64,000 nt of DNA from Octopus sinensis (Eukaryota), in the NCBI RefSeq assembly GCF_006345805.1, contig NC_043021.1, forward strand, positions 25,358,001 through 25,422,000, written 5' to 3'. Shown here one piece after another: positions 25,221-42,674 of this stretch. Within the stretch, counting starts at the first letter, position 1, and every line of letters starts with the position of its first letter. A model generated the notes under the pieces. That model had not been told where the DNA came from. It saw nothing but the letters and a program-made list of their open reading frames with translations, and did not search any database. A program made the translations under genes and the position numbers.

Positions 25221-25350
25221 CTACTTACGTCTTCTCTTAAACATGACAACCATTACACAGAGTTTCGTATGGGGCGACAAATCAACAGGAATAGCTTTCA
25301 CAGGGTAGAAAGCTTTACCTTTCATCGTCTGCGATTTCGGTCTCATCAAA
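25221..25350 (-). CDS. TRMT2A-like: TRMT2A-like exon 13 (LMRPKS...[26 protein letters not shown])
   Basis: ttgcag| acceptor, phase 2, homologous to canonical last exon, TAG at 25223-25221. Confidence 0.92.
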
Positions 25351-40300: not shown

Positions 40301-42674
40301 GACAACTGGAGTTGGTGTGCTTATGCCCGTGACTTAGTGGTTCAGCAAAAGAGACTGATAGAACAAGTAGCAGGCTTTAAAAATATAAGTCCTGGAGTCA
40401 ATTTGTTCGACTAAAACCCTTCAAGGCAGTTGCCCCAGTATGGCCGCAGTCAAGTGACTGAAACAAGTAAAAGGAAAAGAAGGAAAAAAAAAAGAGTTGA
40501 AAATAATTAGTGAGATTTCTTTGAACTAATTTGGATGAATTTACAGATCATTTCAACATCAGCCATGAATTTAATATTCTCAGATTTATTTTGGGTTTTG
40601 CTTTATCAGGTCTTGAGGATTCCTTATTTTATTTTATTTCCTGAATTTTATAAAGAACAACTTTGCACAGAAACACAACAAACATCTTAAAATGGAAAAG
40701 ACTCACAGAACTCAAAAGAAGTAAACATACAGCATGTGTTTGTGTCACATGAAAGGCACCCAGTCCACCCTGTAAAGTGGTTGGCATTAGGAAGGGCATC
40801 CAGCCTTAGAAACCAAGCCATATCAGGTGGGAACCTAGCACAGCTCTCCAACTCTGGTCAAACCAGCCATCCTATGGCAGCATGGGAAATGGACGATAAA
40901 TGATAATGATGATGACATTACCTCTAAACACTCAATCAAATCTCACTGATTACCATGGAGACAATGTCAACCAGACTGGAAAATATCCGGTTGCAAGGGC
41001 CATGGGGAAAGAGTTAACATTAATGAATAAAGAATGAGATAGAAAATATCTTACCTGCGACATCTTTACGCTTAGCAGACAGGTTCTCAAAGCTTCGATC
41101 GGATGTCTACGGAATAAAAGAAAATAAATAAATAAATAAAAAATTGGAAATTTGTAGGGATTAAACAATGTATGCTTATTTCATGAACCACGGAAGGATA
41201 AAAAGCAAAGATGATTGGGATCTTTTCGGTTTGAACGGCAGTTTTTTCTAGCAGTGTCATATGAAATTGTCACCCATAATTATGACCCTAGTATCGATCT
41301 ATTGCATTTCAATCTGTTTTAGGGTTGGGGTTAGTTAGGGTTAGGGGTGGGGGGAAGGGTATCTTTTTTTCTTCACAAATGTAAATAAACCCAATCTGTT
41401 TCTTAAACGAGGGACATATTCATACGGCACAGAATGTTTTCACCTCAATAGATGGTCATTGATTGGTTGAAATTGCCGAAATGCAAGAAATTAAAGACCA
41501 AATATCTTACAAACTATAGAATTTTCTCAATAAAGCCAAGAGAAAAAGATGTTTTATAAACACATTCTACCAGTATACGAAGTTTAAAATTTTTTAGTTA
41601 CCTAGAAATTATGTTAAAAACTGCCTTTCAAACAGAAAAGATCTGATGATTGCAATAGAACTTGAACTCACATTCTAAGGAAAGCAAAAAAAAATTCTTT
41701 AATATATTAAAACGTTTAAATCATTACCCAACCATTTCTACCAATAGTTATAAGATGTATCACAGTAACTGGCAGAGCGTCTCACCCCACCCTCACCGCA
41801 GGTCTATGCACTCCCCAAAGACAACGTATTGTAGTTATCTCCCTTGGTTCGTGTTAGTCACGTGGAAGGAGGGGCTGTTGGTGACATACTTCTGCCACTG
41901 TTCATTAGTATGTAGAAATGTAAGTAACTGATAGCTAATGTGATGGCAAAGTCCTCCTCCTCACCCGGTCGATTAGTTTAGCTAAAGTCTGCCAGCAACT
42001 CAATATCAGCCACGTTACTAACGAGCAAATAGGGATCAGAAGCACATTCCCATTTCAGCCTTTACTTCTGATGCCGTGGCACAACAACTGTGTATTTGTG
42101 GTTCATAAATGTAATTGCAAAGAATTGTTCTGCTTCTGATTTGCCCATCACACATCATTCAGCAGACACGCAAGTATATTAAACAACATCCTCGAGTAGA
42201 TAGGTGTTCCTCTTCTCCAGCAAAACACCTCTTCCTGTCCTTCTTTCCCGGCACAAAACTACCCCATGCAATACTGCACCCTAGGTCAGTAAAGGGGTCT
42301 TATCTTGCAAGTCACTTGGTGACCCTACTAATGCTGGTACTATGATATAAACACCCAGTACTCTCTGTAAAGGGGTTGGCATTAGGAAGAGCATCCAGCT
42401 GTAGAAACACTGCCAAAGCAGACACGGGAGACCCTGCCAAAGCAGACATGGGAGACTTAACACAGTCTTCAGGCTTATCAGATCTTGTTGAACCATCCAA
42501 TCCATGTCTGCATAGAAAATGGACATTAGAGGATGTTGATGATGTGTAACAGGGAAAGACAATTCCCAGGACCCTTCTCTCAGCAGGATTCCAACATTTA
42601 AAAACCACACAAAAGCATGAAAAAGGTCGACTTACGTTGCTGTTATTGTTTCTGTTGGTTTCGGCCTCCATCAT
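25221..42674 (-). CDS. TRMT2A-like: TRMT2A-like paralog, 13 coding exons, 1452 nt / 483 aa, catalytic motifs degenerate (probable pseudo-methyltransferase)
   Basis: Exons 42674-42636, 41106-41055, 40149-40068, 37645-37591, 36185-35721, 34833-34730, 33660-33609, 32926-32866, 30663-30542, 29213-29138, 27373-27257, 26220-26124, 25350-25221 splice GT-AG into one open frame. The product is colinear with TRMT2A ([45 protein letters not shown]). Confidence 0.92.
26124..26220 (-). CDS. TRMT2A-like: TRMT2A-like exon 12 (97 nt; [27 protein letters not shown]; motif VI Cys)
   Basis: Same length and phase as canonical exon 57641-57737; 89/97 nt identical. Confidence 0.95.
27257..27373 (-). CDS. TRMT2A-like: TRMT2A-like exon 11 (117 nt; [11 protein letters not shown]...[12 protein letters not shown]; motif IV)
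   Basis: Same length and phase as canonical exon 59098-59214. Confidence 0.93.
28470..28770 (-). mobile_element. Short (CAT)n-tailed retro-element. Family also at about 17385-17570, 19100-19300, 31810-32000, 40740-40910, 42320-42545, 47115-47300, 49830-50000, 59580-59800, 62170-62340.
   Basis: Shared catcatcat-ttaacgtccgttttccatgctggcatgggttggac and ggatgcccttcctaacgccaacc blocks; boundaries approximate. Confidence 0.7.
29138..29213 (-). CDS. TRMT2A-like: TRMT2A-like exon 10 (76 nt; [25 protein letters not shown])
   Basis: Same length and phase as canonical exon 60989-61064. Confidence 0.93.
30542..30663 (-). CDS. TRMT2A-like: TRMT2A-like exon 9 (122 nt; NNPAAALLY...[17 protein letters not shown]; motif I)
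   Basis: Same length and phase as canonical exon 62763-62884. Confidence 0.93.
32484..32645. repeat. Long interrupted (TA)n microsatellite
   Basis: Read directly. Confidence 0.97.
32866..32926 (-). CDS. TRMT2A-like: TRMT2A-like exon 8 ([20 protein letters not shown]; motif X)
   Basis: Aligns to CIHEDLLGLTFRISPHAFFQ of TRMT2A; tttcag| acceptor, |gtaagt donor. Confidence 0.9.
33609..33660 (-). CDS. TRMT2A-like: TRMT2A-like exon 7 ([17 protein letters not shown])
   Basis: tgtcag| acceptor, AAG|gtaata donor, phase 2 to 0, EHL.G similar to TRMT2A. Confidence 0.82.
34730..34833 (-). CDS. TRMT2A-like: TRMT2A-like exon 6 ([35 protein letters not shown])
   Basis: ttgcag| acceptor, AG|gtgagt donor, GVTSLYF motif. 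Confidence 0.9.
35022..35114. repeat. Perfect 42-bp inverted repeat with 9-nt loop
   Basis: 35022-35063 is the exact reverse complement of 35073-35114; loop cacccaccc. Confidence 0.97.
35721..36185 (-). CDS. TRMT2A-like: TRMT2A-like exon 5 (465 nt; [10 protein letters not shown]...FYAQFLSD)
   Basis: [25 protein letters not shown] and [11 protein letters not shown] motifs; |gtaagt donor. Confidence 0.95.
36240..36610 (-). mobile_element. tRNA-derived SINE, near full length (same family as 4990-5343)
   Basis: High similarity to 4990-5343 along its length. Confidence 0.8.
37591..37645 (-). CDS. TRMT2A-like: TRMT2A-like exon 4 ([19 protein letters not shown])
   Basis: Matches TRMT2A TPLW..PY.EQL motif; tttcttag| acceptor, |gtaggt donor, phase 2 to 0. 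Confidence 0.88.
40068..40149 (-). CDS. TRMT2A-like: TRMT2A-like exon 3 ([27 protein letters not shown])
   Basis: ttgcag| acceptor, |gtaagt donor, phase 1 to 2. Confidence 0.7.
41055..41106 (-). CDS. TRMT2A-like: TRMT2A-like exon 2 ([17 protein letters not shown])
   Basis: Strong pyrimidine tract plus gtag|, CAG|gtaaga donor, phase 0 to 1. Confidence 0.7.
41218..41644 (+). mobile_element. MITE copy 3
   Basis: TIRs; perfect 8-bp TSD gatgattg at 41210-41217 and 41645-41652. Confidence 0.92.
42636..42674 (-). CDS. TRMT2A-like: TRMT2A-like coding exon 1 ([13 protein letters not shown])
   Basis: Acceptor ttttag| 6 nt before ATG (exon starts 42680), donor AAC|gtaagt, phase 0; assigned by phase compatibility only. 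Confidence 0.6.

Follow-up and report, generated by a model that had tools for sequence, protein, structure and literature searches.

A conserved tandem paralog of TRMT2A in octopods lacking the RRM and with a remodelled methyltransferase active site

Two TRMT2A-related genes were present in tandem in the analysed window, a stretch of 64,000 nt of the Octopus sinensis genome (NC_043021.1, positions 25,358,001-25,422,000; GC content ~35-44%), both of them on the minus strand: the 3' part of a canonical TRMT2A, a member of the RNA 5-methyluridine (m5U) methyltransferases, and downstream of it a paralog with altered catalytic motifs. The ATG of the paralog was located at 42674 and the stop codon of the canonical gene at 55025; this spacing of 12.35 kb agreed with the ~12 kb given in an initial annotation of the region. 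The paralog is probably a functional protein-coding gene, a 5'-truncated tandem TRMT2A duplicate which is now a pseudoenzyme with a non-methylating role, for which RNA binding is a candidate.

The spliced model of the paralog, built with the O. bimaculoides protein as a guide, comprised 14 coding exons (39, 52, 82, 55, 465, 104, 52, 61, 122, 76, 117, 97, 122 and 26 nt) encoding a product of 489 aa, and was identical to the O. sinensis RefSeq protein XP_029650873.1, annotated as “TRMT2A”. The GT-AG boundaries previously noted at every intron held for all 13 introns of the spliced model, and the open reading frame (ORF) was intact in three genomes. Exon 1 (42636-42674) started at the ATG (MMEAETN) and ended at a GT donor, the Argonauta ortholog beginning at the equivalent Met. 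Exon 2 (41055-41106; ..AKRKDVAG) was homologous to canonical exon 4, located after the RNA recognition motif (RRM), and exons 3 (40068-40149) and 4 (37591-37645) were the counterparts of canonical exons 5 (85 nt) and 6 (55 nt). The central domain was encoded by exon 5 (35721-36185), in which canonical exons 7-11 were fused, and was followed by exons 6 (34730-34833) and 7 (33609-33660). The remaining exons carried the catalytic motifs: exon 8 (32866-32926), motif X, reading FFS at 32875-32867 (Q303S, codon TCA at 32869-32867); exon 9 (30542-30663), motif I at 30589-30557 (D330N, G334S and G339A); exon 10 (29138-29213), motif II, VAVD at 29198-29187 (G351A and E353D); exon 11 (27257-27373), motif IV, DSPCAE at 27278-27261 (P403S, R405C and G407E); exon 12 (26124-26220), motif VI, SCNP, with the nucleophile Cys430 at 26158-26156; and exon 13 (25229-25350), motif VIII at 25283-25254 (F466S, H471L and E473V), ending at a GTAAGT donor. 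The changes in motifs X, I, IV and VIII were all found at the minus-strand positions first reported for them, including the GAA to GTA change at 25256-25254, though that list was incomplete, as further near-invariant positions (D330N, G351A and others) were also altered.

Exon 14 (23972-23997) encoded ..FHTDMMC followed by the stop codon. Its acceptor was the same in O. bimaculoides, and the equivalent Argonauta exon ended in ..YRSDMMC and a stop. The ORF of 13 exons and 483 aa proposed in the initial annotation has to be replaced: it arose only from read-through of the GTAAGT donor after 25229 (..RRRK and a stop), by which the last exon of 26 nt was missed.

The canonical TRMT2A was represented by its 3' part (55025-63931), composed of six exons (63931-63871, 62884-62763, 61064-60989, 59214-59098, 57737-57641 and 55424-55025) which translated exactly to the C-terminal 290 residues of the O. 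sinensis TRMT2A isoform X3; every catalytic motif was intact. The canonical motif X exon, formerly placed outside the window, was located within it (63931-63871) and read FFQ. The exons of 122, 76, 117 and 97 nt matched the canonical ones in size and phase, as had been described, and so did the preceding exon of 61 nt. With reference to the canonical gene of Argonauta, which has 19 coding exons, paralog exons 2-4 and 6-13 corresponded in size, phase and boundary to canonical exons 4-6 and 12-19, while canonical exons 1-3, encoding the N-terminus and the RRM, had no counterpart in the paralog. RRM_1 was absent from the Octopus and Argonauta paralogs in Pfam searches, and was found in the cuttlefish and Argonauta canonical proteins.

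Two other structural differences were observed between the copies. Paralog exon 5 (465 nt in Octopus, 483 nt in Argonauta) covered canonical exons 7-11 (95+49+64+107+147 = 462 nt; Argonauta contig L007, exons at 17596-23001), and the four adjacent canonical introns were missing from it. Recombination with a segment of reverse-transcribed mRNA (cDNA) would be expected to leave this pattern, which suggests that an event of this kind followed the tandem duplication. At the 3' end, the canonical C-terminal tail was encoded by a tandem repeat of 18/36/72 nt (55059-55300, in the last exon) which showed indels with respect to O. bimaculoides; the Argonauta tail was much longer and made of other repeat units (ADKSCQTQ). 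The paralog had no repeat tail, a new intron and the 26-nt terminal exon being found in its place.

According to profile and structure comparisons, the two-domain scaffold (central domain plus class I Rossmann methyltransferase) is intact in the paralog. It scored 46.6 bits against PF05958 (cut-off 23), with a match that ended ahead of motif VIII (profile position 329 of 357), while the canonical copies reached position 356. The AlphaFold2 model of the O. bimaculoides protein, obtained from an alignment of 28 sequences, had a predicted TM-score (pTM) of 0.78 and was confident for residues 94-526 (numbering of that protein), the first ~50 residues of the real protein being disordered. Both domains matched RNA m5U methyltransferases in Foldseek (target-normalised TM 0.65-0.77, E-values down to 7e-31): RlmCD (5xj2 and 5zq0), the Pyrococcus abyssi TrmU54 (2jjq), RumA, and TrmA (3bt7), with 5xj2, 5zq0, 2jjq and 3bt7 at TM 0.72-0.77.

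The active site was compared in an alignment of the paralog with 149 representatives of the TRMT2 family (clusters at 50% identity) and the O. sinensis canonical copy. Of 16 catalytic or cofactor positions that are near-invariant in the family, 10 were departed from in the paralog: Q303S, D330N, G334S (G334N in Argonauta), G351A, P403S, R405C, G407E, F466S, H471L and E473V. None of the other 150 sequences (the representatives plus the canonical copy) showed more than 4 departures, and 112 of them showed none. Sixty-eight columns were conserved at 85% or more in the family alignment (45 in the methyltransferase part and 23 in the central part); the paralog kept 52 of these, and its losses were concentrated in the methyltransferase part (15 of 45 vs. 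1 of 23 in the central part, Fisher p = 0.007). The canonical copy in the window departed at 1 of the 68.

Most of the residues with a known catalytic role were affected. The general-base Glu (TrmA E358, human E581), present in 141 of 146 ungapped family sequences, was Val473 in the paralog; the uracil-reading Gln of motif X (TrmA Q190), present in 146 of 150 representatives, was Ser303. The S-adenosylmethionine (SAM) motif I (LDxCCGxGxxG) was altered at three positions (D330N, G334S/N and G339A), and G351A was found beside motif II. Motif IV, DPPRxG in the family, was DSPCAE, its Pro, Arg and Gly each being present in 147-148 of 150 representatives. The nucleophile Cys430 in ISCNP (TrmA C324, human C538) was kept in all the paralog orthologs, as were in the paralog the motif IV Asp and the D..PHT core of motif VIII, in which the Phe of FPHT was replaced.

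In Escherichia coli TrmA, the E358Q and C324A mutants are inactive, G220D abolishes SAM binding, and Q190A is 4-fold slower (PMC7641329). G334 of the paralog corresponds to TrmA G220 by alignment, the TrmA sequence used being consistent at nine published residue numbers. Because TrmA E358Q is inactive and G220D, which affects the residue aligned with G334, prevents SAM binding, the paralog is inferred by analogy to be unable to make m5U.

Adenosine-to-inosine (A-to-I) editing is abundant in coleoids and was considered as a way of rescuing the active site. It was rejected: only N330 (AAT), S334 (AGC) and E407 (GAA) could be recoded, and the seven other replacements, including V473 and C405, could not. 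The editable codons were located at 30586-30584 (AAT), 30574-30572 (AGC) and 27263-27261 (GAA), and would be recoded to Asp, Gly and Gly respectively.

Other unusual members were observed among the TRMT2 representatives. In P0134 (Frankliniella fusca), P0130 (Lycorma delicatula), P0073 (Timema spp.), P0184, P0190 and P0090, mostly from hemimetabolous insects, the nucleophile Cys was replaced by Ser. Most of them also lacked the general-base Glu, with SAM motifs largely intact (P0134 had Ala at the first Gly of motif I). Judging from their sequences, these proteins may have lost activity independently, or may work by a different mechanism.

Orthologs of the paralog were identified in O. bimaculoides (XP_014773283/4, 98% identical), O. 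vulgaris (CAI9741051/2) and Argonauta hians (GAB1607961.1, 81%), and the same replacements were present in the O. bimaculoides and Argonauta hians proteins. In both of these species the paralog was located directly downstream of the canonical gene, in the same orientation (gap of 11.2 kb in Argonauta), and the window and the O. bimaculoides locus were colinear, with 82-94% identity at the DNA level, introns included (~82-94%). Part of the gene was also found in a further octopod (SRR11869385-94), in four Logan contigs (L003-L006) reached through protein P0055; these contigs were discarded as transcripts, as they proved to be genomic (intron 4, exon 5 and intron 5). Homolog searches retrieved only canonical TRMT2A, and no paralog-type protein, for cuttlefish and another decapodiform, and a second search with full-length homologs gave no additional paralog-type proteins.

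The paralog was under strong purifying selection. Comparing the window with O. bimaculoides (Nei-Gojobori method, NG86), the whole coding sequence showed 0.152 synonymous substitutions per synonymous site (dS) and 0.0087 non-synonymous substitutions per non-synonymous site (dN), a ratio of 0.057 (42 synonymous and 10 non-synonymous changes). For the methyltransferase part, dN/dS was 0.024 in the paralog (11 vs. 1) and 0.066 in the canonical gene over the same codons (20 vs. 5). Between Octopus and Argonauta, the methyltransferase part of the paralog was 91.2% identical (dN 0.069), and that of the canonical protein 85.6% (dN 0.088). The replaced residues themselves were held despite synonymous change in the three species compared (Octopus and Argonauta): S303 (TCA/TCA/TCC), S403 (TCA/TCG/TCC), E407 (GAA/GAA/GAG), S466 (TCG/TCA/TCA), L471 (CTC/CTC/CTG) and V473 (GTA/GTA/GTC). 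An excess of synonymous codon changes between paralog and canonical copy had been reported for exon 13 (25350-25229); it was seen again with lower counts, 27 of 40 residues being identical and 15 of these carrying a synonymous change, instead of 28 and 16.

These data bear on the possibility that the paralog is a decaying or young pseudogene, or an annotation artefact, conserved only as a result of recent duplication or gene conversion. Such an origin would fit the destroyed catalytic motifs, the homogenisation of exon 12 with the canonical copy (see below) and the absence of a spliced transcript in Logan, which says little given that the Octopus canonical TRMT2A has no Logan members either. 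It is, nonetheless, barely credible. The ORF was intact and the 13 introns were GT-AG across the three genomes; the two copies were synonymously saturated (dS above 2), with 55-72% DNA identity in the shared exons other than exon 12; the gene was present in Argonauta; and dN/dS between orthologs was 0.02-0.06 while introns were ~82-94% identical. Neither a ratio near 1 nor frameshifts were found in the relatives. Taken together, the selection results exclude a decaying pseudogene, and the view of the initial annotation, an old duplicate maintained by selection, was strongly supported by the orthologs with the same replacements, the dN/dS values of 0.057 and 0.024 and the synonymous variation of the replaced codons.

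Exon 12 was the exception to the divergence between the copies. Its DNA identity between paralog and canonical gene was 92-95% within Octopus (92% in the window, 26124-26220 vs. 57641-57737; O. bimaculoides contig L001, 26941-27037 vs. 5719-5815) and 80% within Argonauta (L002, 32526-32622 vs. L007, 30607-30703), the latter value being close to that of exon 12 orthologs between genera (81-85%). The introns flanking exon 12 were not similar between the copies, and the neighbouring exons were 53-72% identical. The high identity of the exon, together with these dissimilar introns, indicates repeated conversion tracts limited to the 97 nt of exon 12. The tracts did not reach the exons with the altered motifs IV (exon 11) and VIII (exon 13). 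Gene conversion was discarded as the source of the low dN/dS, being confined to exon 12 while the remaining shared exons were only 55-72% identical.

Regarding its age, the duplication is at least as old as the Octopus-Argonauta divergence, a span over which synonymous sites were saturated. In a neighbour-joining tree the paralog clade fell outside the octopod and decapod canonical copies, a position in which long-branch attraction is possible. Counts of site patterns for the timing of the duplication relative to the octopod-decapod split were 19 vs. 15 (1/3/1 when polarised), with exon 12 confounded by conversion, and identities leaned weakly toward an octopod-specific origin. The paralog was 45% identical to a bivalve homolog (54-56% for the canonical octopod copies) and 51-58% identical to decapod canonical proteins (69-71% for the octopod canonical ones). 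This greater distance from both groups of homologs indicates that the paralog changed rapidly at first and was tightly constrained afterwards.

A constrained but remodelled pocket might also belong to a rewired enzyme with a two-cysteine site like that of the NSUN-type RNA 5-methylcytidine (m5C) methyltransferases, modifying or covalently capturing a different pyrimidine. In the NSUN mechanism, the motif VI Cys is the nucleophile and a motif IV Asp-x-Pro-Cys serves for base orientation and beta-elimination (PMC6409601). The paralog has D-S-P-C in motif IV and S-C in motif VI and has lost the motif VIII Glu; DSPC was conserved in Octopus and Argonauta, the Cys codon being TGT in all three species, and the pocket residues were fixed rather than drifting. 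This reading is nevertheless very improbable, since motif I is damaged (D330N, G334S/N and G339A, plus G351A near motif II) and the corresponding TrmA G220D change abolishes SAM binding (PMC7641329). Residue 334 is Ser in one genus and Asn in the other, as expected in the absence of cofactor contact. Moreover, R>C, P>S and G>E are each a single transition from CGY, CCN and GGR, and thus among the changes most expected under relaxed constraint, although the Arg codon of the O. sinensis canonical gene is CGA today and R405C (TGT) would require two changes from it.

Transcription of the paralog was indicated indirectly. The O. vulgaris annotation includes two isoforms of it, with intron 11 retained in one, and PASA transcript assemblies were the only source of alternative forms there (PMC10700109). 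The first exon of the O. vulgaris paralog models aligned to 54792-54841 (minus strand), 184 nt past the canonical stop codon and before the first poly(A) hexamer (54248). No AATAAA or ATTAAA was found between the canonical stop and this exon, which is consequently located within the probable canonical 3' untranslated region (3'UTR). At the exon junction the window encodes Ser and O. vulgaris Arg. Transcription of the paralog may thus begin in, or pass through, the 3' end of the canonical gene, by read-through or coupled transcription. Another upstream exon (51889-52008, minus strand), included in the O. vulgaris models and in isoform X1 of O. bimaculoides, has its start within a (TG)n run; its amino acid identity was 63% vs. 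98% for the rest of the protein, and it is probably 5'UTR.

Considering the selection and active-site data, the paralog is likely a selected gene product that is dead for methylation. That its retained function is RNA binding or chaperoning can be proposed only tentatively. The duplication took place before the split of Octopus and Argonauta; the RRM was lost, and residues of the methyltransferase part were replaced and subsequently fixed by purifying selection. The resulting protein would bind or remodel structured RNA without methylating it, using the central domain and cleft that it has kept; the default candidate for its target would be the tRNA T-arm or elbow. Cys430 could form a reversible Michael adduct with a flipped uridine, and the simultaneous loss of SAM binding would prevent suicide trapping after the loss of the general base, which is otherwise required for the release of a methylated product. 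The effect could be chaperone-like, protective, or competitive toward the canonical enzyme. Precedents exist in characterised homologs: in SAM-free TrmA, the covalent cysteine adduct gives ~50-fold tighter tRNA binding, and TrmA folds tRNA independently of catalysis, C324A doing so as well as the wild type in vitro (PMC7641329). Yeast Trm2 also has a catalysis-independent role, its inactive form stabilising a mutant tRNA-Ser (PMC8051267).

Several observations weigh against the paralog being an RNA-binding pseudoenzyme. Human TRMT2A fragments (the RRM alone, the central domain, and the RRM plus part of the methyltransferase) bind tRNA less than the full-length protein (10.1101/2022.12.28.522094), and since the RRM is gone in the paralog, its affinity for RNA may be low or retargeted. 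The “RNA-binding” label of the initial annotation is weakened by these two points, while a non-catalytic role (chaperone, competitor or scaffold), as proposed there, remains likely. The uracil pocket is remodelled, and to judge from the residues present a flipped U may no longer fit. Because exon 12 has undergone conversion, the presence of Cys430 cannot count as separate evidence that the thiol was selected. As to the loss of activity, TrmA Q190A is merely 4-fold slower (PMC7641329), so a single replacement need not disable the enzyme, and the effect of Ser or Asn at G334 on SAM binding is predicted from the analogy with G220D. The Logan result described above, with the restriction given there, should be added to these points.

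The dead copy could alternatively act at the protein level, as a regulator or scaffold working by contacts with the canonical TRMT2A or another RNA-processing factor, with RNA binding secondary. Purifying selection equally strong over the whole fold, including the remodelled pocket, would agree with this, as would the lost RRM, the conserved tandem linkage, and the annotated first exon in the probable canonical 3'UTR, suggestive of coupled expression. This alternative is considered unlikely. TrmA, RumA and RlmCD act as single chains, and no partner interface is known for the TRMT2 family. The residues of the central domain conserved in the family, which in homologs form the RNA side, were kept at 22 of 23 positions, and TrmA, RumA and RlmCD have been crystallised with RNA substrates (PDB titles).

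Other features of the locus were observed. A coronin-like WD40 gene (DUF1899) was located on the opposite strand, downstream of the paralog, in O. bimaculoides (L001, 32441-39123), and the window aligned to it at ~13700-22400; a gene with a RanBP1 domain was found upstream of the canonical gene in Argonauta (L007, 1-3179). A segment of ~5.5 kb (43015-48515), in the first long intron of the paralog, was absent from O. bimaculoides and had a GC content of 0.43-0.44 vs. ~0.36; it contained no ORF of at least 120 aa and probably represents a degraded transposable-element insertion. Two families of short interspersed repeats, visible as recurring pseudo-peptides, were present on both strands in introns and flanks (e.g. 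at 5192, 34540, 35552, 36457 and 40247 for one, and at 4077, 13054, 41547 and 56870 for the other), and long TA/CA-rich microsatellites were found at ~32400-32800 and 30050-30500.

The gene is already present in RefSeq, GenBank and UniProt under the names “TRMT2A” or “TRMT2A-like”, which would mislead the transfer of function, and no literature was found linking TRMT2A with octopus or, among the papers listed, with cephalopods more broadly. Dead RNA methyltransferase paralogs are known; a conserved dead TRMT2 without the RRM is new. The m5U54 enzymes are nearly universal, yet their knockouts are mild, and a role of the proteins as tRNA chaperones, separate from methylation, has long been argued for. 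In this locus evolution appears to have run the separation-of-function experiment: a copy stripped of catalytic residues, cofactor residues and RRM, on which selection has been no looser than on the active enzyme since before Octopus and Argonauta separated. Knowing its binding target would reveal which activity of the TRMT2 scaffold, other than catalysis, is worth keeping on its own. The locus also illustrates the loss of four introns, exon-limited conversion sparing the exons with altered motifs, and possibly coupled transcription of tandem paralogs. Were the rewired-enzyme alternative true, one RNA methyltransferase family would have converged on the mechanism of another, in a lineage known for heavy innovation at the RNA level.

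Compared with TRMT2A, Trm2 and TrmA, the closest known system, the paralog shares with the cephalopod canonical proteins 48-61% identity (48-55% for the whole protein and 51-61% for the methyltransferase part, 59-61% with the octopod canonical copies), the intron positions across ten exons, the central domain and Rossmann fold, the motif VI Cys, the motif IV Asp and the motif VIII D..PHT. Unlike TRMT2A, it lacks the general-base Glu, the motif X Gln, PPRxG, the Phe and His of motif VIII and the Asp and Gly of motif I, as well as the RRM, four introns and the repeat tail, and it has a new terminal micro-exon. The vertebrate mitochondrial TRMT2B is likewise an RRM-less paralog of TRMT2A produced by duplication. 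It presumably keeps the catalytic motifs and stems from an older duplication, whereas the octopod copy branches with cephalopod TRMT2A, is in tandem with it, and has lost those motifs. TRMT2B makes m5U on mitochondrial tRNA and rRNA (PMC7237155).

With respect to the inactive chaperone variants of TrmA, Trm2 and TruB, the octopod gene resembles a natural, fixed separation-of-function allele. Those variants are engineered point mutants of full enzymes which still bind SAM, whereas the octopod copy has lost about ten pocket residues and the RRM, and the TrmA wedge residues F106 and H125 have no clear mappable equivalent in it. METTL14, Trm6/Gcd10, DNMT3L and the dead rRNA methyltransferase homologs of trypanosome mitoribosome assembly intermediates are also conserved, functional paralogs without cofactor or catalytic residues. 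Trypanosome prozymes, METTL14, Trm6 and DNMT3L act as activating or inhibiting partners, and pseudo-methyltransferase partners of this kind work in defined heteromers or assembly complexes; oligomerisation is not known for the TrmA family. Finally, the likeness to NSUN enzymes (Asp-x-Pro-Cys in motif IV and x-Cys in motif VI, equivalent to DSPC and SC) involves four residues, one or two base changes each. Homology with NSUN is limited to the Rossmann fold, and the SAM motif I of the paralog is damaged and not NSUN-like.

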